From positions 1 through 64,000 of IMG/VR virus record IMGVR_UViG_3300021520_000002: DNA of 64,000 bases; one strand, given 5' to 3'. How positions within the stretch are numbered: position 1 is the stretch's first letter; each line of letters begins with the position of its first letter. Positions 2,235 through 54,294 of this stretch are shown here, piece after piece. The position numbers and the translations under genes are program-made. The notes below the pieces were generated by a model. It saw nothing but the letters and a program-made list of their open reading frames with translations, had not been told where the DNA came from and did not search any database.

Positions 2235-2251
2235 AGATGAGGTAGGAAACT

Positions 2252-2911: not shown

Positions 2912-2928
2912 AGATGAGGTAGGAAACT

Positions 2929-3603: not shown

Positions 3604-3618
3604 GTGAGGTATAAAAAC

Positions 3619-4281: not shown

Positions 4282-4294
4282 GTGAGGAAAGAAC

Positions 4295-7805: not shown

Positions 7806-10565
7806 ATGTTAACTGAAGACATAAAAAATAAATATCAAATTCAAAGAGAAAAAGCGGCAGCAGATCTTGCCGAAATAAAAAATATAATAACTTTAATAGA
7901 AAAGAAAGACAGTCAAATAAAAGAGAAATGTGATTTTTTACAAACTCTAGTTGATAGTTTACCAACTCCAATTTATGTTAAAGATCTTAATTTAAGATAT
8001 AAAGTTTGTAATGATGCTTTAGCCATTTTAATGGGAGTTAATAGAGAAAGTATTATCGGCAAAACTCTAACAGAGATCTATTCAGATAATGATGAAAGTA
8101 GATTTATGTATGAAAAAGATATGGAACTTCTTGAAAATGGTGGAACACAAACTTTCGATTATGAAATTGCTGGGATAGGTAAACATCCACAAATTTTAAA
8201 TTTTAACAGATCTATATTTAGAGATGAAAATAGACAGATTGCTGGTATTATTGGTTCTTGTTTTGATATAACTGATAGAGTTAAAAAAGAAAAAGAACTT
8301 AGGGTAGAAAGAGAAAAATTTTATAATGCTTTTGATCAGAGTCCTATACCTAAAGTAATAATACAATATGGAACAGGATTAATTTTAGAGATCAACGAAA
8401 CAGCATTAGAAATGTTTGGTTTTACTCGAGAAGAAATTAAAGACAAAACTGTATATGATTTAAGAACGAATAGTGGAAAATCATTAATTAAAGATTATCA
8501 AGATTTTACTCAAGAATTTTTCTTAAGTCAATTAGATGAAAATAATGGTAGAATTAAAAGTATTGATATTATTATATATACTAAAAATGATGAAGAAAAA
8601 GTTATAGCACTTTCAGCTTCAAAGTATCGAGTTAATGGTGGATTTTGTGTTTTATCTATTTTAAAAGATATTACATATCGAGTATTAGCTGAAAATAAGG
8701 TAAAACAAATTCAACGTAATTATGAAATATTTTTTAACACAATTAATGAATTTCTTTTTGTTCTTGATGAAAATGGAAATATCATTCATATGAATTCGAC
8801 AGTTATTGATCGTCTTGGATATACTAAAGAAGAACTTAAATGTATGAATATTATTTCTCTTCATCCAATTGAACGTCAGGATGATACTAAAAAAATTATT
8901 AGAGATATGCTTGATAAAATTATATCAATATGTCCAATTCCAATCATTACAAAACAAGGCATTCAAATACCAGTTGAAACAAAAATTGCACATGGAGTTT
9001 GGAATGATAAACCTGTAATTTTTGGTGTTTCAAAAGATATTTCAGATCTTAAACTATCAGAAGAAAAATTTTCAAAATTATTTTATATTAATCCGACTGT
9101 TTGTGGTTTAAGTGAATTTGATTCTCATCGATATATTGATGTTAATGAAGCTTTTTATACTTTGCTTGGTTTTGAAAAAGACGAAGTTATTGGTAAAACA
9201 GTACATGAATTAAATATTATAACTCATGATCAAATGAATAAAATATTATTAAATGCTGATATTAATGGAAATATAAAGAATATTGAATCTGATATAAGAT
9301 CTAAAAATGGTAATATAAAACATGTTATATTTTCTTCAGAGAGTTTTTTTGTTCAAGATAAAAAATATCGGTTTGTAGTAGTTCAGGATATTACTGAAAG
9401 AAAAAGAATGGAACAAGAAAATATTAAAATAAAAGAAGAATGGGAAGAAACTTTTAATGTTGTTCCTGAGCTTATTGCTATTTTAGATAATGATCATACT
9501 ATAATTAGAGTTAACAAATCTTTTACCGATAGATTTAATAATTCAATGGATTATTTTATCGGCAAGAAATGTTATGAAATTGTTCATAATAATGATAATG
9601 TACCAGAAGAATGTCCACATGCTCAATTATTATTAGATGGAAAACAACATGTTCAGGAAGGATATGATAATCTTCTTAAAGGTTATTTTATAGTAACTTG
9701 TTCTCCAATATTTAATGATAATAAAGAATTGATTGGAAGTGTACATTCAATGATTGATATTACTAAGAGGAAAGAAACAGAAGATAAACTTAAAGAAATT
9801 AGTGAACAATACCAAACTGCTATAGAATTATCAAATGATGCTGTAGCTATTGTTCAAGATGGTAAACATGTTTTTGTTAATAAAAGATTTTTAGAAATTT
9901 TTGGAATTGATTCTTTTGAAGATATTATTGGTAAAGAATATATTAATGTTTATCATAATGATATTGAATTTGTTAGAGATATAAATAGAAGAAGAACTGA
10001 AGGATTAAGAGTACCAAGTAAATATGAATTTAGAGGTTTAAAACTTGGTGATAGAAGAAGTATGTGTATTGAAGTTTCAGCGGCAAAAATTACTTATAAA
10101 GGTAGAGTGGCTACTTTATCATATCTAAGAGATGTTACTGAAAGAAAGAGATATGAGCAATTTCAAAATTTGCCGATATCAACTTTAGATACTATTCCAG
10201 AAATGGTTTGTAGACACGATTCTAATTTTAAATTTACATACGCTAATGAAACATATTGTAAGTTTATTGGTAAGACAAGAGAAAAACTTGAAACTATGAC
10301 TTTATTTGATTTTATGCCATCAGAAGAAGTTGAAAGAGTAAAAGATTATTTAGCTTCTTTTTCAGTTAATAAAACATCTAGTAGTATAGTTAATAAAGTA
10401 ATATTATATAGTGGAGAAATTGTTTACATATATTGGATGAATAGAGCATTTTTCGATTCTGATAATCAATTAATTGAATTACAATCGATAGGTAGAGTTA
10501 GTGATGTATTCGAAATAGAAGATAAGTCAAATAGAAGATTGGATAAGAAAAATTTGGAGAGATAA
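7806..10565 (+). CDS. Multi-PAS/PAC domain protein (about 7 PAS domains), no kinase or GGDEF output domain
   Basis: Six PAC ends (DITDR, DITYR, DISDL, DITER, DITKR, DVTER) plus a seventh PAS (IPEMVCRHD...YANETYC...WMNRAFFD...QSIGR). No H-box or GGDEF follows. Confidence 0.85.
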   Translation: MLTEDIKNKYQIQREKAAADLAEIKNIITLIEKKDSQIKEKCDFLQTLVDSLPTPIYVKDLNLRYKVCNDALAILMGVNRESIIGKTLTEIYSDNDESRFMYEKDMELLENGGTQTFDYEIAGIGKHPQILNFNRSIFRDENRQIAGIIGSCFDITDRVKKEKELRVEREKFYNAFDQSPIPKVIIQYGTGLILEINETALEMFGFTREEIKDKTVYDLRTNSGKSLIKDYQDFTQEFFLSQLDENNGRIKSIDIIIYTKNDEEKVIALSASKYRVNGGFCVLSILKDITYRVLAENKVKQIQRNYEIFFNTINEFLFVLDENGNIIHMNSTVIDRLGYTKEELKCMNIISLHPIERQDDTKKIIRDMLDKIISICPIPIITKQGIQIPVETKIAHGVWNDKPVIFGVSKDISDLKLSEEKFSKLFYINPTVCGLSEFDSHRYIDVNEAFYTLLGFEKDEVIGKTVHELNIITHDQMNKILLNADINGNIKNIESDIRSKNGNIKHVIFSSESFFVQDKKYRFVVVQDITERKRMEQENIKIKEEWEETFNVVPELIAILDNDHTIIRVNKSFTDRFNNSMDYFIGKKCYEIVHNNDNVPEECPHAQLLLDGKQHVQEGYDNLLKGYFIVTCSPIFNDNKELIGSVHSMIDITKRKETEDKLKEISEQYQTAIELSNDAVAIVQDGKHVFVNKRFLEIFGIDSFEDIIGKEYINVYHNDIEFVRDINRRRTEGLRVPSKYEFRGLKLGDRRSMCIEVSAAKITYKGRVATLSYLRDVTERKRYEQFQNLPISTLDTIPEMVCRHDSNFKFTYANETYCKFIGKTREKLETMTLFDFMPSEEVERVKDYLASFSVNKTSSSIVNKVILYSGEIVYIYWMNRAFFDSDNQLIELQSIGRVSDVFEIEDKSNRRLDKKNLER

Positions 10566-12752: not shown

Positions 12753-13337
12753 ATGATAAGAGAAATAAAAATAGATGTAAATAATCATCCATTTAAATTA
12801 GAAGAAGTATTATATGGTAATGAATTTGTACAATTATCGGAAAGAGTTTTATTATGTCATTTAGCGGCAGAATGTACTGGAAATATTTTAGAAATTGGTT
12901 GTAATAAAGGAATAACAACACGTATGCTTGCTTTAAATAATCCATATAAAATTATTTATGGAGTTGATTATGTTGAAGAGAATACAGGTGATCTTCAACA
13001 AGCTGCAGAAAAACCACCAGAAATAGCTATGTATGCTAGGGATCTTAAAAATGTAGTATTACTTGACTTGGATTCAAGGAAACTTAACTATGATTTATTA
13101 TTTCAGAATGTTGAATTAATATTTCTTGATGGAAATCACACATATGATTTTGTTAAAATTGATAGTGAAAAAGCTCTTAGTTATATGAAGAAAAGAGGTA
13201 GTGGAACAATTATATGGCACGATTATTGGAAGCCACAACCATGGATAGGTGTAATGGATTATGTAGATCAATTCATAGCACCAAATTATGAAATGATTAA
13301 AATTGGGGGAATGGTCGCTTGCCGATTTAAATTCTAA
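12753..13337 (+). CDS. Class I SAM-dependent methyltransferase (Methyltransf_24-like)
   Basis: ILEIGCNKG; LIFLDGNHTYD; GTIIWHDY. Confidence 0.8.
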   Translation: MIREIKIDVNNHPFKLEEVLYGNEFVQLSERVLLCHLAAECTGNILEIGCNKGITTRMLALNNPYKIIYGVDYVEENTGDLQQAAEKPPEIAMYARDLKNVVLLDLDSRKLNYDLLFQNVELIFLDGNHTYDFVKIDSEKALSYMKKRGSGTIIWHDYWKPQPWIGVMDYVDQFIAPNYEMIKIGGMVACRFKF

Positions 13338-14147: not shown

Positions 14148-15839
14148 ATGATAAGAGAAATAAAAATAGATTTTTTAGAAAGAGTGAGAGTTGAAATTCT
14201 TGGAGAACCAGATGGTAATAAATATTTGGTAGAATTTATTAATCAAGATACTAGAATATTAGAATATTCAAGAGAGATGTATATTAATAATTGGGCAGTT
14301 TATATTAAATCATATTTTGTTAATTGGTTAATAAGAGTTACTGGACCAAATTATAAATATGAATATAAATATGATTGTACTGATAAAAAAGTAGTTGTTT
14401 ATTTTTCAGGTACAGGATTAGGTGATGCAATTGCTTGGTTACCAGCTTGTGTGGAATTTGTTAAGAAACATAATTGTAATTTATATGTTATGACAAATTG
14501 GGCAAAATTATTTAGTAAAGTTTATCCTGAAATCAACTTTGTAAATTTTGCCGATACAACAAATGAATATGCTCGATATAGAATTAATCTTTATCATAAT
14601 GATAAGAATAGAAATCACCAACCAAATGATTGGAGAACAATTCCTTTACAACAAATATCATCTGATATTCTTGGAATAGAATATAAAGAATCTGCTCCTA
14701 AAATAGATGTTAGTAATATAAAAACTTCTATGGTAAAAAGACCAAAAAAATATGTTTGTATATCTGAACATACTGCTTTAGGTTATTGTAAGTTATGGCA
14801 TTATCCAGGAGGATGGCAAGAAGTTGTTGATTATTTAATATCTAAAGATTATGAGGTTGTTGTTATAAGTACAGAACCAACTAAATTAGTTAATGTAATT
14901 GATATGACAAACAATTCTATTGAAGTTACTATGGGATTGTTAATGAATTGTGAGTTTTATATTGGAGTAGCATCTGGTTTAGCTTGGTTATCATGGACTT
15001 TAGGTAAGAGAGTTATTATGTTTTCTGGATTCAGTTTACCGTGGTGTGAGTTTCAAACAAACAACTATAGAATTTCTGGTGTAGGAAATTGTGTAGGTTG
15101 TTTACATGATGTATTTATCGACACATCCAGGTGGAACTCAAACTGTCCCAGAAACCAAGATAACACTTGTACTAAACAAATAACACCAAAGATGGTAACT
15201 AATATGATTGATAGATTGGTTCCATCAATAAACATTCCAATAAGTTCATTTCAAGGAGATTATGTGTTTGAAACTACAAAGGCAAATAAAAGAAGACAAA
15301 AGATAGAATTATTTCATAGAATTTTTAAAGGAAAAGGAATTGATATTGGTGCTGGTCAAGATAATGTAAATAAAGATAATATTTTTAAAGATGTTGAGTA
15401 TTGTGAGAGTTTTGATGTTGGACATGGAGATGCTCAATATATAAATTCTTATAAGCCAGAAAATTTTTATGATTTTGTACATAGTTCACATTGTTTAGAA
15501 CATATGGTTGATCCTTTTGAAGCTATTAAAAATTGGTTTTCTTTAGTTAAACCAGGTGGTTATTTAGTAGTTACAGTTCCAGATGAAGATTTATATGAAC
15601 AAGGATATTGGCCATCAAAGTTTTCAACATGTCACAATTGGACTATGACAATTAATAAAGAAAAATCATGGAGTCCAAAATCAGTTAATGTTTTAGGACT
15701 AATTCAATCTCTTGAAAAATATGAAATTATTAAAATTGAATTAGTTGATGTGAATTATAATTATTCTTTAAAGAATTTCGATCAATGTTTAAATGAAGCA
15801 GAATGTTGTGTTGAATTTATAATTCGTAAAAAAGAATAA
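14148..15839 (+). CDS. Aah/TibC-like (BAHT, GT9-related) glycosyltransferase fused to a C-terminal SAM methyltransferase
   Basis: GLGDAIAWLP, KLWHYPGGWQ, YIGVASGLAWLSW, SGFSLPWCEF, CxxC...CP...CT iron-finger cysteines; then IDIGAG...HSSHCLEH...KPGG. Confidence 0.75.
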   Translation: MIREIKIDFLERVRVEILGEPDGNKYLVEFINQDTRILEYSREMYINNWAVYIKSYFVNWLIRVTGPNYKYEYKYDCTDKKVVVYFSGTGLGDAIAWLPACVEFVKKHNCNLYVMTNWAKLFSKVYPEINFVNFADTTNEYARYRINLYHNDKNRNHQPNDWRTIPLQQISSDILGIEYKESAPKIDVSNIKTSMVKRPKKYVCISEHTALGYCKLWHYPGGWQEVVDYLISKDYEVVVISTEPTKLVNVIDMTNNSIEVTMGLLMNCEFYIGVASGLAWLSWTLGKRVIMFSGFSLPWCEFQTNNYRISGVGNCVGCLHDVFIDTSRWNSNCPRNQDNTCTKQITPKMVTNMIDRLVPSINIPISSFQGDYVFETTKANKRRQKIELFHRIFKGKGIDIGAGQDNVNKDNIFKDVEYCESFDVGHGDAQYINSYKPENFYDFVHSSHCLEHMVDPFEAIKNWFSLVKPGGYLVVTVPDEDLYEQGYWPSKFSTCHNWTMTINKEKSWSPKSVNVLGLIQSLEKYEIIKIELVDVNYNYSLKNFDQCLNEAECCVEFIIRKKE

Positions 15840-15855: not shown

Positions 15856-16551
15856 ATGATGTCTGTAATGTACTTATTTGAAGGTAAACCAGATAATCCA
15901 AACAGTGTAATTCTGTTGAATGAATACTATCCTAAAGGATTAACTCAACAACAAATCTATGATTATTACATGAATAATAAGAATAAGGTTCTCAATCAAG
16001 TTAAGAATAGAGAAGTGATGTTCTTTTTTGCAGTATCAAAGAATCAATTTATTGTTCGAAGAAAAGCTGCTGATGAATATTATAAACTTACTCCTGAGAA
16101 CTATGAAGACATGATTAATGGAAGAGTTGTATCAATTCATTCAACAATGAGTTCAAATGAAGAGTTTGGTATTATTGATATTGATTTTCATATTTTTGAT
16201 CAATGTAAGAAAGCTGCCGCTGAAATATATGATTATTTATTTAAGTTTTATAATAAGAATCTACAAATAAGATATACAGGTAAACAATCATTTCATATTG
16301 TTTATAATTTTAATAGATCATATAGAATTGAAACTGTTAAAGATTATTTGAAAGATGCTTTACATGGGCTTAATAAACAATATATTATTGGCGGCAAAAG
16401 ATCTGAAGAAAAAATAAATCTTGATCTTTCAAGTAATAAATATCGTGGTGGTTTTATTACTTTAAATTCATTATCAATAAATGGACTAAGATGTATGGAA
16501 ATAAAAAGAGAAGACTTAGACAAGTTTGTACAGAATCAGGCAAGAATCTAA
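15856..16551 (+). CDS. LigD-type primase-polymerase (AEP) domain protein with MxS leader
   Basis: LTQQQIYDYY, IIDID (DxD), YTGKQSFHI (motif II), INLD. Starts MMSVMYLFE. Confidence 0.65.
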   Translation: MMSVMYLFEGKPDNPNSVILLNEYYPKGLTQQQIYDYYMNNKNKVLNQVKNREVMFFFAVSKNQFIVRRKAADEYYKLTPENYEDMINGRVVSIHSTMSSNEEFGIIDIDFHIFDQCKKAAAEIYDYLFKFYNKNLQIRYTGKQSFHIVYNFNRSYRIETVKDYLKDALHGLNKQYIIGGKRSEEKINLDLSSNKYRGGFITLNSLSINGLRCMEIKREDLDKFVQNQARI

Positions 16552-16563
16552 GTTGGGGGTTTT

Positions 16564-16797
16564 ATGGTGTCTATATCTAATTTATTCGAAATCAATTTAA
16601 AATATGTGCCGATAGAAAAACAGAAAATGGGTGTAAGTGATAATTTTAAACATTATCTTGAAAGACTTAAATCAGATAGAGAAAAGATATTAGGTAAATC
16701 AGAAAGTGAAAATATTAATCCATTAAGACAATTTGGAAAAACAGAAACTGTAAATAGCAATCCAAATCCAATGAAACAGTTTGGGGTAGAAATATGA
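16564..16797 (+). CDS. MIS-leader family small protein
   Basis: Starts MVSISNLFE. Confidence 0.6.
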   Translation: MVSISNLFEINLKYVPIEKQKMGVSDNFKHYLERLKSDREKILGKSESENINPLRQFGKTETVNSNPNPMKQFGVEI

Positions 16798-17051
16798 TTA
16801 GTATAATTAATTTATTTGAAGAAATGAATATGGAAGTTCCTGGGAATTTTTCTGGAAGTGGAATAACCAGAGTAGTATCAAATAATAGTGGTGATGCACG
16901 AGAGGCAGAATTAGCAGCTTTCATGAAACGCCAAAGAGCAGCATTAAAAGAACAATCTGAATTACCACCAGGAGCAGAAAAAAGTCAAAAAAGACTTATG
17001 TTTAATCGTGGAGAAGAAATTAATGAGTTAGTAAGTAAATCAAAGAGGTAA
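16794..17051 (+). CDS. MIS-leader family small protein
   Basis: Starts MISIINLFE. Confidence 0.6.
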   Translation: MISIINLFEEMNMEVPGNFSGSGITRVVSNNSGDAREAELAAFMKRQRAALKEQSELPPGAEKSQKRLMFNRGEEINELVSKSKR

Positions 17052-17055
17052 TATT

Positions 17056-17247
17056 ATGATTAGTATTATATTTGAATTTAATTTTGATGATTTAAGTTTT
17101 GGTGGTGTCACTAGTAATGCTAAAAAATTAATAGCGGCAAAAACCGAACAAGATCAAAAACCAGGTTTACTTTCTAATATGTTAAAAAATAAAATTAAAG
17201 CAGGTATAGAAAATAAAATTAATACTTTAACTACAAAACCAATGTAA
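17056..17247 (+). CDS. MIS-leader family small protein
   Basis: Starts MISIIFE. Confidence 0.6.
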   Translation: MISIIFEFNFDDLSFGGVTSNAKKLIAAKTEQDQKPGLLSNMLKNKIKAGIENKINTLTTKPM

Positions 17248-17257
17248 GGGGTAAACT

Positions 17258-17464
17258 ATGATTAGTATTGTTGAAATGTTTAATACATCACCACAAGCTC
17301 TTTCCGATAAATGGAAATATTATAATAATGAAGCACAGAAATCTGGTAATATTGATTTACAAAATAAAGCTCAGAAAGCAGCAGCTCTTTCTAATGCCTC
17401 TTTATATCCTACTGGTTCAATATCATGGAAAAAATATATGGATAGAGCTAAAGGAGTTAATTGA
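17258..17464 (+). CDS. MIS-leader family small protein
   Basis: Starts MISIVE. Confidence 0.6.
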   Translation: MISIVEMFNTSPQALSDKWKYYNNEAQKSGNIDLQNKAQKAAALSNASLYPTGSISWKKYMDRAKGVN

Positions 17465-17583
17465 TGTTATCTATTATTGATTTATTTGAAACTAAACAAG
17501 ATAAAAAGAAAGAAAAAGAATCTGATAAATCAAAAACTAAAAAATATGATGAAGAACATGAAGGAGATGAAGACGATGATTAG
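17464..17583 (+). CDS. MIS-leader family 39-aa peptide, absent from the ORF track
   Basis: AAGGAG RBS; TGATG coupling with the upstream stop; MLSIIDLFETKQDKKKEKESDKSKTKKYDEEHEGDEDDD. Confidence 0.6.
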   Translation: MLSIIDLFETKQDKKKEKESDKSKTKKYDEEHEGDEDDD

Positions 17584-18013
17584 TTTAACTAATTTGTTTG
17601 AAATATCTCCAGAACATGTTGTGACTCCAGATTCAGATATTAATGGAAAATTTCTTGTCCATTTTCATCAAGCTAGAAAAGCTGGGGATCATTTTGATAT
17701 CAGATTAGGAAAAGATGGAGCTTTAGTTTCTTGGGCAACTAAAAAACTTCCAGAATTAATTGATGAAGAATCTAAGAAAATTATGTTGTTCAAACAACCA
17801 GATCATGATGCTGCTTGGTTCAATTTCAAAGGTGAAATTACTGATGGATATGGAGCTGGAAATGTCAATATCTGGGATAAGGGAAAATATAAGGTTTTGA
17901 AATGGGAAAAGAATATTATAACTGTTGATTTTAAAGGAACTAAAATAAAAGGAGTTTATACATTTCTTTTCTATGGTGAAGATAAATGGTTATTATTTAA
18001 ATCTAAGGGGTGA
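17576..18013 (+). CDS. LigD 3'-phosphoesterase (PE) domain protein with MIS leader
   Basis: ATG at 17576 after AAGGAG (MISLTNLFE); FLVHFHQA...HFDIRL...LVSWA...PDH...GYGAGNVNIWDKG...G.Y...WL. Confidence 0.85.
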   Translation: MISLTNLFEISPEHVVTPDSDINGKFLVHFHQARKAGDHFDIRLGKDGALVSWATKKLPELIDEESKKIMLFKQPDHDAAWFNFKGEITDGYGAGNVNIWDKGKYKVLKWEKNIITVDFKGTKIKGVYTFLFYGEDKWLLFKSKG

Positions 18014-18017: not shown

Positions 18018-18596
18018 ATGAAGAATATGATATTAATTGTGGAAGCATTTACAGAAGCTGAAAAAAGAAGAATTAAACGGGAATTAGATAGAGTAGAAGA
18101 ATTTAAAGCGAGAAATGAAGCAGGAACAAACACAGAAACTCCAAATCAAGCTGGAACTAAATTATATGATGAACATGTTATTAGAACTCATAGAGATGTA
18201 AATAATTCTCTTAACGCACATTTAGCTGCTAATAAATATGCACCAGATAAAGATAAAAGTTTATTTAATAAATTTATGGCTAATTATACTAAAGGTATAG
18301 CTGATATACATGCTGGGCGAGTAGATAGAGCTACTAAAATAATGAATGAAAGATTAAAGAATAATAATTTTAATCGTCCAGTTACTTGGAATGAAAAAAC
18401 AGAAGATATAATCAAAAATAAAGTTATTCCAACTGTAAGAGATAAAGTTATTCCAGCGGCAAAAAATATTGGAAATGCAGCTTTAACTAACGCTCAAAAA
18501 ATTGGAGTGGCTGTAGCAACTCGAGCTAAAACTGCAGCTAGTAATATTAGGAATTATACACAAACAAAATTTCAAAATTTTAAATCTAAACCATAA
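18018..18596 (+). CDS. Basic hypothetical protein with leader-like N-terminus
   Basis: ATG at 18018 after AAGGGG; starts MKNMILIVE. Confidence 0.5.
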   Translation: MKNMILIVEAFTEAEKRRIKRELDRVEEFKARNEAGTNTETPNQAGTKLYDEHVIRTHRDVNNSLNAHLAANKYAPDKDKSLFNKFMANYTKGIADIHAGRVDRATKIMNERLKNNNFNRPVTWNEKTEDIIKNKVIPTVRDKVIPAAKNIGNAALTNAQKIGVAVATRAKTAASNIRNYTQTKFQNFKSKP

Positions 18597-18699: not shown

Positions 18700-19170
18700 G
18701 TGATTATTAAAACACCTAACATTTTTTTCCTTACATGTGGAAATTCAGAGGGATTTTCTTTATTGAATGCTTTTGATGGAGCACTTTTAAATTCAGGTAT
18801 TGGAGATATGAATTTAGTTAGACTAAGTTCAATATTACCACCATATTGTCAAGAAGTAGAAAAAATTAATATTCCTTACGGTTCTCTTGTACCAACAGCA
18901 TATGCTTCAATTACAAGTGATATTCCTGGAGATATTATTTCTTCTGCTGTAGCAGTTGGTGTTTCCGAAGATCCCAATCTTGCTAGTCTTATAATGGAAT
19001 ATTCAGCTCGTGCCGATAAAGAAACCGTTGAAATACAAGTTAGAAAAATGGCAGAAGAGGGAATGAAATTTAGGAATAGAAATATTAAAGAAATAAAATC
19101 AATATCAGCAACTCATAAAGTTATATCTTATGGTGCGACTTTTGCTGCAGTTATTTTGTGGTCAAATTAA
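18700..19170 (+). CDS. pdaD: Pyruvoyl-dependent arginine decarboxylase
   Basis: LNAFDGALLNSGIGDMNLVRLSSILPP (Ser-Ser autocleavage site), GSLVPTAYA, LIMEY. Confidence 0.9.
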   Translation: MIIKTPNIFFLTCGNSEGFSLLNAFDGALLNSGIGDMNLVRLSSILPPYCQEVEKINIPYGSLVPTAYASITSDIPGDIISSAVAVGVSEDPNLASLIMEYSARADKETVEIQVRKMAEEGMKFRNRNIKEIKSISATHKVISYGATFAAVILWSN

Positions 19171-19187: not shown

Positions 19188-19745
19188 ATGGAAAGAAAAA
19201 GAAATGATCCTAATGAAATCATTGTTGAAGATGATATTTGTCGAATGAAATTATATAATAATAAATGTGAAGAAGTTGCAGAAACTATTTTTGATCTTAA
19301 ATATAAATCTGAAATTGAAAAATATAAGTGGCATTTACAAAAAGGTTATGTAGCAACTGATTGGTTTGATGAAAATGATAAACATGTACAAATGTGTTTA
19401 CATCAAGCAATCATTCAAATATCTGGACAAGAAGTACCAGAAGGATATGAAATAGATCACAAAGATACAATTAAATTAAATAATTTAGAAGAAAATTTAA
19501 GAGTTTGTACAAGATATCAAAATCAACATAATAGAACAAAACAAAGAAATAACACAAGTGGTTATAAAGGTATTACTTGGCAAGAACAATCTAAAAAATG
19601 GAGAGCTCAAATTCGTGTTAATAATAAAAAGATATTTTTAGGATTATTTGAAAAAGATTTAGATGCAGCACAAGCTTATAATAATGCCGCTCTTCAATAT
19701 CATGGAGAGTTTGCTCAAATAAATCCAATTTCAACAGGAGTATAA
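19188..19745 (+). CDS. HNH endonuclease with C-terminal AP2 DNA-binding domain (homing endonuclease)
   Basis: IDHKD...NNLEENLR...N; SGYKGITW...KWRAQI...LGLF...AAQAYN. Confidence 0.9.
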   Translation: MERKRNDPNEIIVEDDICRMKLYNNKCEEVAETIFDLKYKSEIEKYKWHLQKGYVATDWFDENDKHVQMCLHQAIIQISGQEVPEGYEIDHKDTIKLNNLEENLRVCTRYQNQHNRTKQRNNTSGYKGITWQEQSKKWRAQIRVNNKKIFLGLFEKDLDAAQAYNNAALQYHGEFAQINPISTGV

Positions 19746-19747
19746 TC

Positions 19748-19981
19748 ATGATATCAATTTCTAATTTATTTGAACAGGACGAAACCTGGATACAAGACGC
19801 GAAGCCAAAGAAAGGTTTACTTCATAGAAAATTAGGAGTTCCACAAGATGAAAAGATACCACAGGAGAAGTTACAAAGTATAAAAGATAGATTACACAAT
19901 AAAGCTGAAAAAGGAAAATTATCTCCTTCTGAACTTAAAACTTCAAGAAGAGTTAATTTTGCAATAAACGCACAAGGATAA
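19748..19981 (+). CDS. MIS-leader family small basic protein
   Basis: Starts MISISNLFE; WIQDA...KGLLHRKLGVPQDEKIP. Confidence 0.6.
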   Translation: MISISNLFEQDETWIQDAKPKKGLLHRKLGVPQDEKIPQEKLQSIKDRLHNKAEKGKLSPSELKTSRRVNFAINAQG

Positions 19982-20959: not shown

Positions 20960-21468
20960 TGGAAAATGTAGTAGAAAAAGAAAAGAAGTCAGTAGATTTT
21001 ATTTCAAGACAACAGAGACGTCAACAAGAAAGAGATCAAGAAAAGTATAATGAAGCAATGAGAAAACAGATGGCAGCAAATGCAACAAAAGGTGATTTGA
21101 TGATGTTGGTCCAATCATTTCAGAAACTGAGAGATAGATTGTTTCAGATGGATATTATTAATTCAGCTTTAGAAAAAATTATAATTAGTAAAGGACTTGC
21201 AACAAGAGATGAAATTAAAGAAGCTGTTGGTCAAGAAGCTAATAGAGCAGTAAAAATGAAAGAAGTATCTGAAGAAAAAGGAAATTATGAAAAGAGACTT
21301 GAAACATGTAAAGAATGGGATATAGTAGCTGATATGACTAATATTCCAATTCAAATTTTACAGGATAATTCTTTGACTGAAGTTCAGAAAAGAGAACTTG
21401 CTGAAAAATATGAATTACAAAGTGTTTTAGATAAATTAGACGGAAAAGAGGAAAATAAAAATGTTTGA
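20959..21468 (+). CDS. Hypothetical helical protein
   Basis: GGAGG RBS; charged, helical. Confidence 0.55.
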   Translation: MENVVEKEKKSVDFISRQQRRQQERDQEKYNEAMRKQMAANATKGDLMMLVQSFQKLRDRLFQMDIINSALEKIIISKGLATRDEIKEAVGQEANRAVKMKEVSEEKGNYEKRLETCKEWDIVADMTNIPIQILQDNSLTEVQKRELAEKYELQSVLDKLDGKEENKNV

Positions 21469-24400
21469 TTTAGTATTAGGAAATAGTAGCTATTTAGGAC
21501 ACACAGGCTACGCTCATCACTCAAGAGAATTTTTTACAAGATTAAGTAGAAGAGTTCCTGTTAGAATCAGAAATTTCGCATATGTTGAAAGTCTTGATTA
21601 TTTAACACAAGAACAAAAAGATTTAGTCATTCATCAGACTTGGAATCAACCACCTTATGAAGTTGGTAAACCATTTGAAAGAAATCCAAAAGATAAAATT
21701 GTGAATATTGTTCTTAATGAAACAAACCATTTTTATTTTTATGATAAGTATGAAGGTCCTAAAATAGCTTATAATGTTTGGGAAAGCACCATACAACCTT
21801 TCGGGTTTTTTAATAAGTTATTAGAATATGATCAATTGTGGGTACCTACAAAATGGCAAAGAGATTGTTCCATTGGACAAGGATTTCCAGCGGCAAGAGT
21901 TAAAATTGTTCCAGAAGGAATAGATGGAACAAAGTTCTGTCCTGGTGATAGTGATATATCTTTAACACAACTTAGAAAAGATGAATTTAATTTTACGTTA
22001 ATTGGTCGTTGGGATAATCGTAAATCAACAACTGAAATTATTAGAGCTTTTTTAAATGAATTTAAAGAAGATGAGCCAGTTAATTTATATCTTCATGTTG
22101 ATAATCCTTGGGGCGAGAAAATAGATGGTTTTAAAACAACTGAAGAACGTATGAAACATTATGGATTTGATCCAGAATATAAAAGATTTGTTCTTATTAG
22201 AGGTCTTGAACGAGTTGAGAATGATGATCTTTATATTAATTATCTTCGTAATGCTAATTGTTTTATAAGTTGTGCCAAAGCTGAAGGATGGAATATTCCT
22301 TTAATTCAAGCAATATGTTGTGGAACACCAACTATATCTTCTAATTATGGAGCACAATTAGATTTTGCCGATCAAGTATCCCATCTTGTAAATATAAAAA
22401 GATATGTAAAACCATATAAAGTTTTTATGCAAGATGATAATACTCCTGGAGTTGTTGCTGAACCAGATTATGAACATCTTCAACAAGTAATGAGAGACGT
22501 TTATAATAATTATAAAGAGTATAAGGAAATTGCATTAAATGATTCTATAACTATTAGAGAAAAATTTGATTGGGAAAAAGCTGTAGATAAAGCAATGCCA
22601 GCTTTGGAAGAACTTTATCAAAGATATTACCCACCAAGAGTAAGACTCAATCTTGGTTCTGGTAATTTTATAAAAGATGGATATATTAATATTGATGAAT
22701 TTGTTGAATCAGAAGATATTAGAAAAATGAGTATGCTCAGTTTAGATTTTGCCGATAATAGTGTTGATGAAGTATATACTTCCCATTCTTTGGAACATTT
22801 TGGTAAAGATGGAGTAAATCAAGTTCTTAAAGAATGTAATCGGGTATTAAAACCAAATGGAATTATTGTAATTGAAGTTCCTAATCTTGAAAGTGTTTTA
22901 CAACATTGGTTGAATACAAAAGAAGAAGATAGATGGGGATTTCCTTTAGATACTATTTTTGGTATGCAAACTACTCCTGGTGAATATCATAAAACAGGAT
23001 TTACAAAACAACGTTTATCTGAAGTGGTTAAACAAGCTGGATTTGAAGTTGATGAAATTAAAGACATAGATAGTCATGCTCAAGAATGTATTTTATTAAC
23101 TGCTCATAAAATTAATATTAGAGAAAACAGTGTAGTTATTGTTGATTGCTATCCAGATAATGAATTGAAACAAAATTTATTAATTAAACAAATTCAATAT
23201 CTTAAACAATTCGGTATGCCAATTTTATTAACTACTCACTATTCAGGATTATCAAAAGAAATTATTGAATTAGTTGATTATGTTGTTTATGATAAAAGAA
23301 ATATTATGAGTGAAGATAGTTTAGGATATTTCTTTGTTCAAGAAAAATTTATTAAAGTTAAAAGTGTAATTTCGAAAAAATACCATTCTTTAACTGTTCA
23401 TATGAATCTTAAGAATGCTTTAACGTTTTGTAGAAACAAATTTAAATATGCACATTTTATAGAATATGATGTTAATGTAGATTTTTCGAGACATTTAGAA
23501 GTTGTTGAAAAGTCTTTATTAGAATCTAAATTTTGTGCATACTCATATGATGAAGAAATGGAAAATCTTAAAAAAGTATCTCAAAATAAAGATATTAGTG
23601 GAATAGTTACTAATCTTTTATCTTTTAATGTTGATTGGTTAGATGATAATTTTATTAATATTGATAATTGGAATTCATATAAACAAATAGCTTATGCATC
23701 ATCGATAAAAAATCATAAATTTGCAGATCTGATTTATGAAAATTGGTTATATGATTATTTTAAAGCAGGAGATTTATTTAAAAATATTAAGCTTTTTGAT
23801 AGAGATTTGAAAAATGAAATAATAAAAGAAAGAAGTGTAGTATCTTCTGAAATGTTTGATAACAAAATTGTTTTTCTCACATCAGAAACAGATCAACACG
23901 AAGTTATTCTATTTGTAATAAATCATTTTTCAGATCATGAAGTTGATTATAAATTTATTTGTAATGATCATACTAGTGAAGGTAAAATACCTACAAACGG
24001 TTTAGCATATTATGTTGCTAATAAAATTGATAAAGTTAGAGTTATAATTGATGGAAGAGTTGAAGATCTATCTTTTGATTTTGCAAAATTATATGCTGAA
24101 ACTAGATTTAAATTTGGTGATGATAGATTTAAATGTTTTGTGTGGACAGATGATGATGATGATGGTTTTACTCCTGGAAGGGAAAAGAAAGTTGCCGATG
24201 TTAGATTCCATTATGTTGATGGGGCTTTTGTTGAATTACTTGGAAAAAGTTCTGATGAAAAATTATTTGAGGTTGAGTTTTCTGATCAAGATGAAAATAA
24301 AAAATTATACTCAACTAGATTATCACCGAACATGTGGTCAAAATCTGACTATAAATACTTTATAAATTGGAAAACCCTTGTAAAATATAAGAATGATGTT

Positions 24401-25276
24401 ATCTTTGAACATTTATATAATGCAAAAGGTAAAAGAGTTCTGATAACGGTTGATAGTAAAGCTATGGGTGATACTGTGGCTTGGGTACCTTATCTTGAAG
24501 AATTTAGAAAGAAACATGAATGTCAACTTATTGTAACAACTTTTTGGAATAAACTTTATAAAGACATGTATCCAGAAATCGAATTTCACGAACCTGGTGA
24601 AGGATTAAGAGATTTATATGCTCAGTATGTTGTTGGTGTTTTTGATGATGATTATAATCGTAATAAGATTCATTGGAGATCTATACCGTTACAAAAAGTA
24701 GCATCAGATTTACTTGGTTTAGAGTATAAAGAAATTAAACCAAGAATTTTAATTAAACCAGAAGAGAAAAGAGAAATTAAACAAAAATATGTTGTATTAT
24801 CTCAGCATAGTACTTTTCAATGTAAGTTTTGGTTATATCCAAATGGTTGGCAACGTATAGTTGATTATTTAAGTGGTTTAGGATATAAAGTTGCAATAGT
24901 TTCTTTACAAAAACCATTAGAAGTTAAAAATGTAATTGATTGTACTGGTAGAGATATATTTGATAGTATTAATATTATTAAAAATGCTGAATTTTTTATA
25001 GGTATTAGTTCTGGTCCAACTTGGTTAGCTTGGGCATTAGATATTCCAACTATTTTAATTTCAGGATATAGTTCTGAATGGGCAGAAATGCAAGAAACAG
25101 ATACAGCTATTAGAGTTATAAATAAAAATGTTTGTAATAGTTGTTGGCAAGATTCAAGTCAACCAATTGATAGAGGAAAATGGGATTGGTGTCCTAGAGA
25201 TAAGAGAATGGAGTGTACAACACAAATAACTCCGAAAATGGTAATTGATGCAATAGAAAAAATTAGAATCAAGTAA
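21461..25276 (+). CDS. Four-domain enzyme: GT4-type glycosyltransferase + SAM methyltransferase + unknown domain + Aah/TibC-like (BAHT) glycosyltransferase
   Basis: GT4: TGYAHH, GRWDNRK, AEGWNIPLIQA. MTase: LNLGSG, SHSLEH, RVLKPNG. BAHT: AMGDTVAWVPY, KFWLYPNGWQ, FIGISSGPTWLAWAL, CNSCW...WCP...ECT. Confidence 0.8.
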   Translation: MFDLVLGNSSYLGHTGYAHHSREFFTRLSRRVPVRIRNFAYVESLDYLTQEQKDLVIHQTWNQPPYEVGKPFERNPKDKIVNIVLNETNHFYFYDKYEGPKIAYNVWESTIQPFGFFNKLLEYDQLWVPTKWQRDCSIGQGFPAARVKIVPEGIDGTKFCPGDSDISLTQLRKDEFNFTLIGRWDNRKSTTEIIRAFLNEFKEDEPVNLYLHVDNPWGEKIDGFKTTEERMKHYGFDPEYKRFVLIRGLERVENDDLYINYLRNANCFISCAKAEGWNIPLIQAICCGTPTISSNYGAQLDFADQVSHLVNIKRYVKPYKVFMQDDNTPGVVAEPDYEHLQQVMRDVYNNYKEYKEIALNDSITIREKFDWEKAVDKAMPALEELYQRYYPPRVRLNLGSGNFIKDGYINIDEFVESEDIRKMSMLSLDFADNSVDEVYTSHSLEHFGKDGVNQVLKECNRVLKPNGIIVIEVPNLESVLQHWLNTKEEDRWGFPLDTIFGMQTTPGEYHKTGFTKQRLSEVVKQAGFEVDEIKDIDSHAQECILLTAHKINIRENSVVIVDCYPDNELKQNLLIKQIQYLKQFGMPILLTTHYSGLSKEIIELVDYVVYDKRNIMSEDSLGYFFVQEKFIKVKSVISKKYHSLTVHMNLKNALTFCRNKFKYAHFIEYDVNVDFSRHLEVVEKSLLESKFCAYSYDEEMENLKKVSQNKDISGIVTNLLSFNVDWLDDNFINIDNWNSYKQIAYASSIKNHKFADLIYENWLYDYFKAGDLFKNIKLFDRDLKNEIIKERSVVSSEMFDNKIVFLTSETDQHEVILFVINHFSDHEVDYKFICNDHTSEGKIPTNGLAYYVANKIDKVRVIIDGRVEDLSFDFAKLYAETRFKFGDDRFKCFVWTDDDDDGFTPGREKKVADVRFHYVDGAFVELLGKSSDEKLFEVEFSDQDENKKLYSTRLSPNMWSKSDYKYFINWKTLVKYKNDVIFEHLYNAKGKRVLITVDSKAMGDTVAWVPYLEEFRKKHECQLIVTTFWNKLYKDMYPEIEFHEPGEGLRDLYAQYVVGVFDDDYNRNKIHWRSIPLQKVASDLLGLEYKEIKPRILIKPEEKREIKQKYVVLSQHSTFQCKFWLYPNGWQRIVDYLSGLGYKVAIVSLQKPLEVKNVIDCTGRDIFDSINIIKNAEFFIGISSGPTWLAWALDIPTILISGYSSEWAEMQETDTAIRVINKNVCNSCWQDSSQPIDRGKWDWCPRDKRMECTTQITPKMVIDAIEKIRIK

Positions 25277-30006: not shown

Positions 30007-30041
30007 GAGATAAGTAACTTAATTTTTAGGAGGTTTTATTT

Positions 30042-31286: not shown

Positions 31287-31302
31287 TTTTTTAGAAACTC
31301 AA

Positions 31303-31331
31303 AAAGAGGGAGATGATATTTCTCCCTCTTT
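31303..31331 (+). terminator. Intrinsic terminator-like hairpin
   Basis: AAAGAGGGAGA, 7-nt loop, TCTCCCTCTTT. Confidence 0.7.
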
Positions 31332-31360
31332 AATTAAAATTTAGTTTCGGAGGGCTTTAT

Positions 31361-34021: not shown

Positions 34022-34024
34022 AAT

Positions 34025-34435: not shown

Positions 34436-34444
34436 AAATGTTTG

Positions 34445-34476
34445 ATCGGCAAGATTTAGAAATAGATCTTGCCGAT
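34445..34476. terminator. Hairpin built from paired TTGCCGAT motifs
   Basis: ATCGGCAAGAT...ATCTTGCCGAT, intergenic. Confidence 0.65.
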
Positions 34477-34508
34477 AATTAATTGGTATTTAATAGGAGG
34501 TAATTTTA

Positions 34509-40159: not shown

Positions 40160-40363
40160 ATGATTTCAATTTCTAGTTTATTTGAAGCTCCAAATGTGCC
40201 TTCTGAACAAGCAAATGGATTAACTGTGCCGTTTGGAAATTATAATCCAGCAAAAAGAAATAATGAAGTTTTAGGTAATCTTCAAGGTTTAAACAAGTTA
40301 CCACTCGAAGATCAGGTTAAGAAGTTACGTGATAGTGGAGTTGATATTGGTACTTTTATATAA
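40160..40363 (+). CDS. MIS-leader family small protein
   Basis: Starts MISISSLFE. Confidence 0.6.
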   Translation: MISISSLFEAPNVPSEQANGLTVPFGNYNPAKRNNEVLGNLQGLNKLPLEDQVKKLRDSGVDIGTFI

Positions 40364-40374
40364 TAGGAGTATTT

Positions 40375-40560
40375 ATGATTTCAGTAAGTATATTATTTGA
40401 AGATGACAGTTCAATACAAAAAAATTTTATTCCAAAATTAGATCAAAAAGAAAATCAACAAACTATTCTTGGACTTATTAAAAAACCAATCAAAAAAATA
40501 CAAAATATTTTTATAGGAAATCCAGATTTTTCAGGAACAATTGCTGGATCACGTGGATAA
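40375..40560 (+). CDS. MIS-leader family small protein
   Basis: Starts MISVSILFE. Confidence 0.6.
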   Translation: MISVSILFEDDSSIQKNFIPKLDQKENQQTILGLIKKPIKKIQNIFIGNPDFSGTIAGSRG

Positions 40561-40569
40561 GGAGTACTT

Positions 40570-40743
40570 ATGATTTCTGTAAGTAGATTATTTGAAGATG
40601 GTAATTTAGTACAAAATACAAATCAAGAGAATAAAAATATTATTCAAGAAATTGTTAAAAAAGCAATTAAAAAAATATCTGTAGCTGTTGAAGGTAAAGT
40701 GGATGTTAGTGGACCTACAGCTGTTACTGGTATACGTGGATAA
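40570..40743 (+). CDS. MIS-leader family 57-aa protein, absent from the ORF track
   Basis: AAGGAG RBS; MISVSRLFEDGN...SGPTAVTGIRG; paralog of the previous ORF. Confidence 0.6.
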   Translation: MISVSRLFEDGNLVQNTNQENKNIIQEIVKKAIKKISVAVEGKVDVSGPTAVTGIRG

Positions 40744-40755
40744 GAGAGGAAGATT

Positions 40756-40929
40756 ATGATATCAATTATATTTGAATTTGATTTAGAAAAAACTAGACAA
40801 GGATTTTTTAATAAACAAGTTAAAGAATTAGAAAATAAAAAAGAAATTCCTGGTACGATAGCTGAGAAATTACATCAAAAAAATATTGACAATATGAAAA
40901 TCGAAGCTAGTGGAAAGTATCCGAAATAA
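40756..40929 (+). CDS. MIS-leader family 57-aa protein, absent from the ORF track
   Basis: GAGGA RBS; starts MISIIFEFD. Confidence 0.6.
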   Translation: MISIIFEFDLEKTRQGFFNKQVKELENKKEIPGTIAEKLHQKNIDNMKIEASGKYPK

Positions 40930-51127: not shown

Positions 51128-51331
51128 ATGATTTCAGTTTCTGATTTATTCGAAATATCTCCAATTAATATTGATAATTATAAAAATACAAATCGAGAAC
51201 CAGAAGCAAAAATAATAAATCATTTGATTAATATTAAAGGTAAAGATCCACAAGCATATAAAGCTGAAAGACCATATTTATTGAATCAGATAAAACAAAA
51301 TAAAGTTGCCGATAATAGGAGTTTATCATGA
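51128..51331 (+). CDS. MIS-leader family small protein
   Basis: Starts MISVSDLFE. Confidence 0.6.
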   Translation: MISVSDLFEISPINIDNYKNTNREPEAKIINHLINIKGKDPQAYKAERPYLLNQIKQNKVADNRSLS

Positions 51332-51678
51332 TTAGTGTTAGTCAAATATTTGAGTCTGAATTAGATGGACCTTTAGATGATTATTCATATCTTTTACATC
51401 ATGTTGAAGTAGATGATAAAGGTAATGAGAATTTACATCATTGTTTTGTATATGATCATTTGGGTAATATGTTTACTCAAGATACAATTATTATTAAAGA
51501 TGGAAAATGTTATGATGGAAATAATAAATTATTAAAAGATGGAACTTATCATTCAATTTCAGGTTTAGAACCAGAACAAGAAGTTTGTTGGAGTGATTCA
51601 CAAGCAGAAGAAAATGGAATTAAACCAAAACGTATGGTTGCAGGAATGACATATAAACAGAAAGCTAAGGAGTGGTAA
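51328..51678 (+). CDS. MIS-leader family protein, His-rich
   Basis: Starts MISVSQIFE; LLHH..., LHHC, HSI. Confidence 0.6.
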   Translation: MISVSQIFESELDGPLDDYSYLLHHVEVDDKGNENLHHCFVYDHLGNMFTQDTIIIKDGKCYDGNNKLLKDGTYHSISGLEPEQEVCWSDSQAEENGIKPKRMVAGMTYKQKAKEW

Positions 51679-52388: not shown

Positions 52389-52826
52389 ATGATTAGTGTA
52401 AATTATTTATTTGAAGGTGATGAACCTAAAGGGGTTATAACAGATGAAAATATTTTAAAGGATGTAAAAAAGACACAAGAAATTCAAGATGCTGTTATAA
52501 GACTTATTATAGACAAAAAACTAAGACCGGATGATGATGACATTCATAATCTTGCCGGTAAATTTAATATGGACCCACATGAGTTTGAAGAAGTTATTTA
52601 TGCTTTACTTGGTGATTTAATTACTAAAAGTGCTGGAAAACATAAGGATATTCCAATATCAAAATTTGATCCAAAACAAGTTAAGATAGGGATGAAAATA
52701 GAAAAAGAACATTCAGACAATCCAGCGATAAGAGCAGAAATAACTAAAGATCATTTAGCTGAATTTCCAAAAGATTATTATACAAGATTAGTTAAATTGG
52801 AAAAAGATGCTAAGAAAAATAAATAA
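52389..52826 (+). CDS. MIS-leader protein with DUF5661-like C-terminal domain
   Basis: MISVNYLFE; FDPKQVKIGMKIEKEH...ITKDHLAEFPKDYYTRL. Confidence 0.6.
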   Translation: MISVNYLFEGDEPKGVITDENILKDVKKTQEIQDAVIRLIIDKKLRPDDDDIHNLAGKFNMDPHEFEEVIYALLGDLITKSAGKHKDIPISKFDPKQVKIGMKIEKEHSDNPAIRAEITKDHLAEFPKDYYTRLVKLEKDAKKNK

Positions 52827-53967: not shown

Positions 53968-54294
53968 ATGATATCAATTTCTAGTTTATTTGAGGGAGAA
54001 AATATTATAGAAAAAGTTGTTGATGAAAAAAAATTTAGAAAAAAATTTGATCAAGGTTCTTTAAGATATAATATGATGTTGGGTTCATTAATAGCACCAG
54101 CTTCATTAGCGGCAAAAACTGCATTTGTTGATAAAGATATTTTAAATAAATTAAATCAGGATCATACATTGGCTGCTCCTGCTGCGTTAGCTGCAGCATC
54201 AGCTCTTGGTGCTGGAAGTGCAGCCGCTATACATGGGGTTGTTAAAAGTTATTTTAAAGTAAGAGATAAAATTAAAAGGAGAAAGAAACAATGA
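53968..54294 (+). CDS. MIS-leader protein with Ala/Gly hydrophobic segment and basic tail
   Basis: MISISSLFE; AALAAASALGAGSAAAIHGVV...KRRKKQ. Confidence 0.6.
   Translation: MISISSLFEGENIIEKVVDEKKFRKKFDQGSLRYNMMLGSLIAPASLAAKTAFVDKDILNKLNQDHTLAAPAALAAASALGAGSAAAIHGVVKSYFKVRDKIKRRKKQ

Follow-up and report, generated by a model that had tools for sequence, protein, structure and literature searches.

An uncultivated 286-kb freshwater jumbo phage (IMG/VR record IMGVR_UViG_3300021520_000002; 285,572 bp) places the same 9-residue N-terminal leader on about 26 otherwise unrelated proteins, among them a LigD-type polymerase (Pol) and a LigD-type 3'-phosphoesterase (PE). We consider this leader most likely to be a cleavable capsid-targeting signal, and we infer that the phage probably injects enzymes that heal DNA ends together with its genome. 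Our analysis started from a sequence-only reading of a 64,000-nucleotide window (positions 1 to 64,000 of the record), which noted a Pol-like and a PE ORF as separate genes flanking five small leader-bearing ORFs, with no ligase or Ku in the window, and which proposed that the two enzymes are packaged and co-injected to repair genome ends or breaks made by restriction enzymes or Cas nucleases, or to circularize the genome before phage gene expression. The observation holds as described. The interpretation is supported only in part: both enzyme identities and the shared leader are correct and the idea that the leader marks virion cargo is now well supported by indirect evidence, whereas packaging, cleavage, and the proposed purpose remain inferences.

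Two LigD-type enzymes and the ORFs between them

The PE is encoded at 17576..18013 (+) and consists of 145 amino acids beginning MISLTNLFE; its start is supported by a GGAG located 9 nt upstream and by six homologs that all begin at the leader. The sequence matches Pfam LigD_N with an E-value of 2.1e-19 (70.1 bits against a curated cut-off of 31.1) and PE chains in the PDB (3p43, 3p4h, 5dmp, and 3n9b) with E-values down to 3.9e-22, and a fold search of the predicted structure recovered the same group, as the only seven PDB matches with E<=0.001 are PE structures, with an rmsd of 1.8–1.9 Å to the best two, 3p4h and 3p43. The Mn ligands His42, His48, and Asp50 and the phosphate contacts Arg52 and His84 correspond to H31, H39, D41, R43, and H77, which are invariant in 50 viral PEs. 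In contrast, Tyr88, which is essential in Pseudomonas LigD (PMC8656161), is replaced by Trp (W81) in all 8 proteins of the leader-bearing clade, whereas 30 of 42 other viral PEs have Tyr at this position; five of the six active-site residues are present, and the Mn-dependent 3'-phosphatase and 3'-ribonucleoside resection activity of LigD PEs is only inferred for this protein from sequence and fold.

The polymerase is encoded at 15856..16551 (+) and consists of 231 amino acids, of which the leader MMSVMYLFE occupies 15856-15882. Pfam, PHROGs, and PDB searches with the single sequence returned no hit, and only a profile of homologs and a fold search resolved its identity as a small archaeo-eukaryotic primase (AEP). 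A profile of 66 homologs has invariant D108, D110, and D190 and a near-invariant H147 (at least 90% conserved), which correspond to AEP motifs I (DxD), III (Asp), and II (His), and it hits the LigD/NHEJ polymerases 5dmu (1.1e-6), 2iru, and 2fao; 21 of the 66 homologs, but not the protein itself, match Pfam LigD_Prim-Pol. The AF2 model (pLDDT 95.8) has as its 16 best PDB matches only LigD Pol, NHEJ Pol, or Prim-PolC structures (TMq 0.72–0.80, E about 1e-10), and other AEPs have E-values of at least 6e-4.

Five small ORFs lie between the two enzymes: 16564..16797 (+) (77 aa, basic, MVSISNLFE), 16794..17051 (+) (85 aa, basic, MISIINLFE), 17056..17247 (+) (63 aa, basic, with the degenerate leader MISIIFEF and a similar N-terminus at 40756), 17258..17464 (+) (68 aa, basic, with the degenerate leader MISIVEMFN), and 17464..17583 (+) (39 aa, acidic, MLSIIDLFE, with a poly-Asp tail). 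The first and the last of these have orthologs in a relative that we designate L008. Further carriers within the window are a basic 189-aa protein at 18027..18596 (+) with the variant leader MILIVEAFTE, whose L008 ortholog starts MISICEALSE (the longer ORF from 17973 overlaps PE); a small basic ORF at 19748..19981 (+) (77 aa, MISISNLFE), also with an ortholog in L008; a run of four small leader ORFs at 40160..40929 (+) (starting at 40160, 40375, 40570, and 40756); two leader ORFs at 51128..51678 (+) (67 aa, MISVSDLFE; 116 aa, MISVSQIFE); a DUF5661 protein of 145 aa at 52389..52826 (+), a domain that in another phage (L035) is fused to PE-ligase; and a basic 108-aa ORF at 53968..54294 (+) (MISISSLFE).

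No Ku and no ATP-dependent ligase was found in the whole genome, including none with a leader, an outcome the sequence-only reading had named as a check. An NAD-dependent ligase is encoded outside the window at 216655-218532(-) and has no leader.

The leader and the head module

All seven proteins of the locus start with variants of M-I-S-[IV]-x-x-L-F-E. Genome-wide, the leader always sits at an ATG start, and 19 PSSM hits of at least 15 bits were found, all directly after Met at ORF starts, against one Met-preceded hit of at least 12 bits in 20 shuffled genomes taken together, which rules out chance. The Ser codons of the leader switch between TCN and AGY and only a Shine-Dalgarno site is present upstream, so that selection acts on the peptide and a DNA-level element can be rejected. 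Paralogy of the carriers can likewise be rejected, as they share no similarity with each other except for one pair; most are small, and 19 of 26 have a mature pI of at least 9. A secretion signal was excluded because the leader has neither a hydrophobic core nor a basic N-region. Three carriers are encoded on the minus strand outside the late gene block (184851, 188565, and 189269), although they sit beside RNAP genes, and some leader variants lack Glu at position 9.

The leader is an add-on. Of 112 polymerase homologs, 85 start directly at the conserved core (e.g., MSYPKNP), and 16 have an extension of 6–13 residues, of which 14 end in hydrophobic-x-E; these include M[KN]x[IV]xx[FY]LxE forms similar to the T4 capsid targeting sequence (CTS) MKTYQEFIAE (PMC8442874), carried on contigs too short to indicate what phages they come from. 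The leader is disordered in the models of both enzymes (residues 1–10 have a pLDDT of 55 in Pol and 48 in PE), and in 8 PE orthologs M1, L7, and E9 are invariant.

The genome encodes a 254-aa Peptidase_S80 prohead protease at 94957-95721 (26.8 bits, cut-off 23.4) next to a scaffold-like acidic protein starting MLLVEVLFE, and a major capsid protein starting MYEQAIFE. Among 85 capsid homologs (37–96% identity), 84 begin M-x(1-9)-[LI]-[FY]-E-N-Y-E-x-F-[LI]-x-E, which contains the tripeptide that ends the leader. Pfam Peptidase_S77 and Gp23 searches of the genome found nothing, but their controls gave no signal either and these searches are uninformative; some of the capsid homologs do hit Gp23. 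A structure prediction of the protease in complex with the leader peptide gave no answer and is evidence neither for nor against cleavage.

The closest precedent is the CTS of T4 internal proteins IPI-III and Alt, which are diverse anti-defense cargo that share only the CTS (PMC3012670, PMC5694885). As in T4, a leader of about 10 residues ending in hydrophobic-x-Glu is found on otherwise unrelated, mostly small basic proteins, the capsid protein carries the same motif, a protease of the gp21/gp175 superfamily is present, the cargo locus differs between relatives, and the cargo includes anti-defense functions. The present leader differs in sequence, the protease falls in Pfam S80 rather than S77, there are about 26 carriers, the cargo includes nucleic-acid repair enzymes not known as T4-type internal proteins, and the parallel rests on sequence alone. 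With phiKZ and SPN3US, the phage shares the protease family (gp175/gp245), a jumbo genome with two multisubunit RNAP sets, and, by inference from the leader, many head-internal proteins processed after Glu; however, known propeptides in those phages are mostly longer than 100 residues and the characterized proteases cut after S/A/G-x-E (PMC5694885), whereas here the leader is a uniform 9 residues with L/I at P3.

Association of the polymerase and phosphoesterase genes

In three of four relatives examined (L014, L064, and L065), Pol and PE both carry leaders and lie 0.2–3.3 kb apart; in the window, the five small ORFs (about 1 kb) separate them. In other phages the two domains occur in a Pol-PE fusion (L054), in giant Lig-Pol-PE proteins (L029; L025 with PE as the next ORF), and in a Pol-2H-PE protein (L026), in L028 a Lig-Pol protein sits beside a DJ-1-PE-2H protein, and in L050 a MuF-Pol fusion has PE nearby; homologous domains thus occur in proteins of 1352–2769 aa in other phages. 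These phage proteins recall the polyvalent proteins and MuF-fused effectors described previously (Iyer et al. 2017, PMC5512222), which fits the theme of enzymes delivered with the DNA, although in the genome studied here the domains are not combined in one large polypeptide but are separate small genes, each with its own leader. The cargo locus is variable: a relative with an 86%-identical PE has two HExxH proteins with the leader where Pol sits here, with no Pol in the 20 kb seen, and another relative has a leader-bearing Thoeris inhibitor, Tad6.

Compared with bacterial LigD and with the split archaeal NHEJ set (Methanocella paludicola Pol 5dmu, PE 5dmp), PE retains the fold and Pol retains the AEP motifs and a predicted fold closest to LigD PolDom, and Pol and PE are separate genes, as in archaea. 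However, Pol is about 60 residues shorter and 12–17% identical, both proteins carry a phage leader, and the Ku and ATP-dependent ligase partners are absent from the genome. The mycobacteriophages Omega and Corndog also use NHEJ chemistry on their own genome ends at entry, but they encode Ku and borrow host LigD to circularize the genome, whereas this phage encodes the Pol and PE parts without Ku and appears to deliver them preformed.

Proposed role and alternative readings

We hypothesize that the leader is a capsid-targeting propeptide that directs its carriers into the assembling prohead, where the S80 protease would remove it by cutting after the Glu, and that the mature proteins would stay in the head and enter the cell with the DNA. 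In this view, Pol and PE form a functional pair that heals and fills nucleic-acid 3' ends before any phage gene is expressed; their most likely substrates would be ends, nicks, or gaps of the incoming phage DNA, with sealing left to a host ligase or to the NAD-dependent ligase of the phage. The enzyme identities, the leader as a peptide-level add-on, the LFE/IFE motif shared with the capsid protein, the presence of the protease, and the linkage and fusions of Pol and PE, which support that the two work together, are established by our analyses; packaging, cleavage, ejection, the catalytic activities of the enzymes, and their substrate are inferred, in the absence of proteomic or biochemical data. 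We favor this explanation as a whole with moderate confidence; we are fairly confident that the leader is a capsid-targeting or cleavage signal, but the assignment to DNA-end repair or genome establishment is tentative. Against the explanation stand the lack of a leader-bearing ligase or Ku and the Trp of PE in place of Tyr88.

The alternative that survives best, although we consider it unlikely, is that the proteins are packaged cargo but the pair acts on RNA or on nucleotide signals, for example by healing 3'-phosphate or 2',3'-cyclic-phosphate ends of tRNAs cut by host anticodon nucleases or by destroying defense messengers. PE co-occurs with LigT/2H phosphoesterase domains in giant phage proteins (L026, L028), which hints at RNA or cyclic-phosphate substrates, the ligase domains there also score weakly as RNA_ligase, a leader-bearing HD-domain protein and the leader-bearing Tad6 of a relative show that anti-defense cargo uses the same leader, and RNA-repair kits built from phosphoesterases and ligases are described for jumbo phages (PMC7824862). 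However, Pol is closest to template-dependent NHEJ gap-filling polymerases, the fused ligases score best as ATP-dependent DNA ligases with an OB domain, and no RNA ligase family was found in this genome, although the control for one of these searches was uninformative.

It is less likely still that the AEP is the primase or primase-polymerase that starts replication, with its link to PE reflecting primer trimming. No DnaG-type primase domain was found in the genome, a profile search of the called ORFs that covered this family but no other AEP types found no second copy, and a leaderless homolog sits beside RNAP genes in another jumbo phage; in addition, the genome has PolB, topoisomerase II, helicases, and two multisubunit RNAP sets like phiKZ-group phages, which are reported to lack a recognizable primase (PMC7824862). 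Nevertheless, the fold and profile are specifically LigD-PolDom-like rather than replicative-primase-like, there is no helicase or zinc-finger partner, the gene sits in a variable cargo locus and is missing from that locus in a close relative, and the domain is repeatedly fused with ligase and PE, which is the LigD repair set. Least likely, the leader serves another post-translational purpose (sorting to a phage compartment or membrane, a degron, or a co-translational assembly tag) and Pol and PE act only after ordinary expression, a reading allowed by the lack of direct evidence of packaging, the carriers outside the late block, and phiKZ-like features that make a compartment conceivable, but opposed by the tripeptide shared with the capsid protein across the clade, the leader on the scaffold-like protein beside the protease, the match in length and hydrophobic-x-Glu end to the T4 CTS (PMC8442874), the lack of signal-peptide character, and the attachment of the same Pol domain to MuF, a head-associated module, in independent lineages.

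More speculatively, and in our view less likely than not, delivery of a LigD-like end-healing set (polymerase, 3'-phosphoesterase, and often ligase) with the genome may be a widespread and unrecognized phage strategy, reached independently through short cleavable capsid-targeting leaders (at least one, possibly two sequence dialects), MuF fusions, and giant Lig-Pol-PE proteins, that protects or re-seals incoming DNA before any phage gene is expressed. If the leader is a capsid-targeting signal, N-termini alone would give the injected proteome of an uncultivated jumbo-phage lineage, about 26 proteins, and DNA-repair enzymes would be added to the known kinds of phage-injected cargo, which bears on how phage DNA survives its first minutes in a cell containing end-directed nucleases, restriction, and CRISPR cuts. 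The leader also offers a short natural tag that could be tested for loading foreign proteins into capsids, as the T4 CTS is used.

The polymerase belongs to a compact LigD-type family of about 220 aa with no close match in the phage records or viral structure library searched: tblastn of Pol and of the capsid protein against 50,697 phage records (INPHARED/GenBank) gave no match, and blastn of the locus gave only a weak 280-bp hit. Metagenomic contigs yielded no information on genome ends, and a 350-nt contig of the PE gene occurs in a metatranscriptome library, which does not prove transcription. The phage recurs in lake metagenomes from several studies, and a 93–94% relative among these contigs keeps both Pol and PE.

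Genomic setting and identity of the two enzymes

The 285,572-bp IMG/VR virus record, of which the window is the first 64 kb, has a G+C content of 29% and a CheckV completeness of 95%. Plus-strand genes from about 1 to 107 kb include tail-fibre-like collagen proteins, a tail tube, the large terminase, a candidate portal (by position only), a prohead protease and the major capsid protein, whereas the long minus-strand block holds PolB, topoisomerase II, helicases, UDG, an NAD-dependent ligase, and two multisubunit RNAP beta-like genes. Neither the capsid protein nor the polymerase described below has a relative among the 50,697 phage records (INPHARED/GenBank) searched, although near-identical DNA is present in lake and freshwater metagenomes from several studies.

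The sequence-only reading had described a LigD polymerase-like gene and a LigD phosphoesterase gene that share an N-terminal leader and flank five small ORFs, and this observation holds. ORF 17576-18013 is a LigD 3'-phosphoesterase (PE): it matches Pfam LigD_N at 2.1e-19, its best PDB relatives by sequence are the archaeal stand-alone PEs 3p43 and 3p4h, and its AF2 model (pLDDT 87) has seven PDB matches with E<=0.001, all of which are PE structures, with rmsd of 1.8-1.9 A to the best two. A 350-nt contig identical to part of the PE gene (window 17601-17950) was found in a freshwater metatranscriptome library from a sample that also holds the phage DNA; DNA carry-over is not excluded. In contrast to PE, ORF 15856-16551 gave no hit as a single sequence in Pfam, PHROGs and PDB searches. 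An exhaustive HMMER search, however, found 337 relatives, mostly of 220-235 aa, whose alignment has invariant D108, D110 and D190 and near-invariant H147, corresponding to AEP motifs I-III. The resulting profile hits the NHEJ polymerases 5dmu, 2iru and 2fao, and 21 of 66 members hit Pfam LigD_Prim-Pol. The AF2 model of this protein (Pol; pLDDT 95.8) has as its 16 best PDB matches only LigD polymerase or Prim-PolC (TMq 0.72-0.80), well separated from other AEPs, whereas predicted viral structures contain nothing close.

The N-terminal leader and its carriers

Genome-wide, 19 ORFs start with a strong match to M-I-S-[IV]-x-x-[LI]-F-E, and with weaker variants (MMSVMYLFE of the polymerase itself, MINIGYLFE, MISIIFEF twice, MISIVEMFN, MLLVEVLFE, MISLFEMF, and MILIVEAFTE) about 26 genes carry the leader. 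The feature is statistically overwhelming: every match of at least 15 bits follows a Met at an ORF start, while 20 shuffled genomes together gave one Met-preceded match of at least 12 bits. The Ser codons alternate between TCN and AGY and only a Shine-Dalgarno site is found upstream, so selection is on the peptide. The carriers are unrelated apart from one pair, most are small, and 19 of 26 have a mature pI of at least 9; those with a Pfam domain include an HD phosphohydrolase, DUF5661, and DUF5662. One carrier, a 52-aa ORF (MISITRLFE) at 184851-185009 (-) of the full record, overlaps by 8 nt the start of a 592-aa ORF at 183080-184858 (-), which lies next to a 1548-aa RNAP beta-like gene at 177910-182556 (-). 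A second beta-like gene lies at 222157-224127. A leader-tagged virion RNAP subunit, or a frameshift, is possible. The two best internal matches to the leader pattern, VININQLFE at window 62971 (inside ORF 62545-63948) and MIDIKNLFE at 247193 of the full record (inside ORF 245933-247651), lie inside larger proteins and could be internal protease sites. Two ORFs of the set at window 12753-13337, 14148-15839 and 21461-25276 share a different start, MIREIKID; however, the N-terminal 357 aa of the 563-aa protein are 37% identical to the C-terminal part of the 1271-aa glycosyltransferase/methyltransferase protein, so this is a repeated domain and not a second leader.

The leader is an add-on. Of 112 polymerase homologs whose N-terminus lies near the domain start, 85 begin directly at the conserved core, and 16 have an extension of 6-13 residues, 14 of which end in hydrophobic-x-Glu. 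The extensions fall into the MIS...FE dialect and a second dialect, M[KN]x[IV]xx[FY]LxE, which resembles the T4 capsid targeting sequence (CTS) MKTYQEFIAE (PMC8442874). All six close PE homologs carry the leader, and M1, L7 and E9 are invariant across eight orthologs that share only about 55% identity overall. In both AF2 models the first ten residues are disordered. That cellular LigD homologs might share the same N-terminus had been set beforehand as grounds for rejecting virion delivery; we find that relatives outside this clade do not share it.

A putative capsid-targeting propeptide in a variable cargo locus

We posit that the leader is best read as a capsid-targeting propeptide that is removed by the prohead protease. 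ORF 94957-95721 is a Peptidase_S80 prohead protease, the phiKZ gp175 family, scoring above the curated cut-off. Directly upstream is an acidic, scaffold-like protein of 162 aa starting MLLVEVLFE, and directly downstream is the major capsid protein, starting MYEQAIFE-NYEMFLNE. Among 85 full-length capsid homologs (37-96% identity), some of which hit Pfam Gp23, 84 begin M-x(1-9)-[LI]-[FY]-E, as a rule followed by N-Y-E-x-F-[LI]-x-E, so the tripeptide that ends the leader is also the conserved N-terminal feature of the capsid protein. In T4, a CTS of 10-20 residues is what loads the internal proteins into the prohead (PMC5694885), and proteases of this family, in T4, phiKZ, and SPN3US alike, cut after Glu. 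We are nevertheless cautious, as packaging and cleavage are inferred, a prediction of the protease-leader complex gave no answer, and characterized S80 proteases prefer S/A/G at P3 (PMC5694885). T4 internal proteins are basic, abundant and diverse and share only the CTS, and at least IPI is an anti-restriction factor (PMC3012670, PMC8442874).

The locus studied here behaves likewise. In the close relative L008, whose PE is 86% identical, two leader-bearing proteins with HExxH motifs (8056-8577 and 8873-9703; 173 and 276 aa) lie between the same flanking genes in the place of the polymerase gene. In the related phage L014, a protein with the Pfam domain "Type I Thoeris inhibitor Tad6" (5.7e-13; 3640-4164) starts with the leader variant MISVVNLLE, suggesting pre-made anti-defence cargo. 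Within the leader-gene cluster of the window lies an HNH/AP2-type homing-endonuclease-like gene (19188-19745), the relative's ortholog of which hits HNH_3 and AP2; such genes may help shuffle the cargo locus. The cluster also contains a pyruvoyl-dependent arginine decarboxylase (18700-19170; Pfam PvlArgDC 4.6e-39), which is conserved in L008 and is a possible auxiliary metabolic or polyamine gene.

Linkage of Pol and PE and their possible role

Conserved linkage and domain fusions support the view that Pol and PE are a functional pair. Both carry the leader and lie close together in the window, and the same holds in three of the four relatives examined (L014, L064, and L065). A scan of IMG/VR found 42 viral loci with PE, in which PE occurs alone without a leader or as PE-ATP-ligase-OB fusions. 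One of these fusions (locus L035, 9740-11854) ends in DUF5661, the domain of the leader-bearing 145-aa protein at window 52389-52826. DUF5661 also lies 2 kb from PE on the contig of P0153, and it may be an unrecognized part of the end-repair set. Among the other loci there is a direct Pol-PE fusion (L054), and giant proteins combine the domains as Lig...Pol...PE (L029, 2769 aa), Lig...Pol with PE as the next ORF (L025), and Pol...2H...PE (L026). In L028 a Lig...Pol protein sits beside a DJ-1...PE...2H protein, and in L050 a MuF-Pol-TFIIB protein has PE 3 kb upstream. MuF and giant polyvalent proteins are the recognized vehicles for enzymes that travel with phage DNA.

The sequence-only reading further proposed that the two enzymes are packaged and co-injected to repair genome ends or breaks or to circularize the genome, and this interpretation is supported only in part. 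The enzyme assignments are correct, and virion delivery is well supported by comparative evidence but unproven, whereas the specific repair purpose is plausible, but not shown; catalytic activity is likewise inferred from sequence and predicted structure. The sequence-only reading had noted no ligase or Ku in the window, and searches of the whole genome found no Ku and no ATP-dependent or RNA ligase family, while the NAD-dependent ligase has no leader. Any sealing step therefore needs a host enzyme or later phage expression. PE keeps H31, H39, D41, R43 and H77, but at the Tyr88 position it has Trp in all eight clade members, in contrast to Tyr in 30 of 42 other viral PEs; Tyr88 is required in Pseudomonas LigD (PMC8656161). 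The 2H partners in other phages leave RNA or cyclic-phosphate substrates possible, and as no DnaG-type primase was found in the genome, a priming role for the AEP also remains possible. [quoted passage not shown] These two phages reportedly supply their own Ku. Whereas CTS-tagged internal proteins are already known, the leader, the lineage, and the inferred class of cargo described here are new.

Elsewhere in the window, five tandem paralogous genes (1563-4957) encode proteins of about 220 aa that are 40-77% identical, with N-termini like MLVKIAGRVRGLFAGNYPENREDE. Five consecutive genes at 29125-38553 encode collagen-triple-helix repeat proteins, likely fibres, in a region where G+C is locally raised to 0.35-0.43 against 0.29 for the genome. 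A 919-aa protein encoded at 7806-10565 is made almost entirely of PAS domains (at least five copies, Pfam E down to 8e-55), which is unusual for a phage, and is conserved in the relatives L007 and L008.
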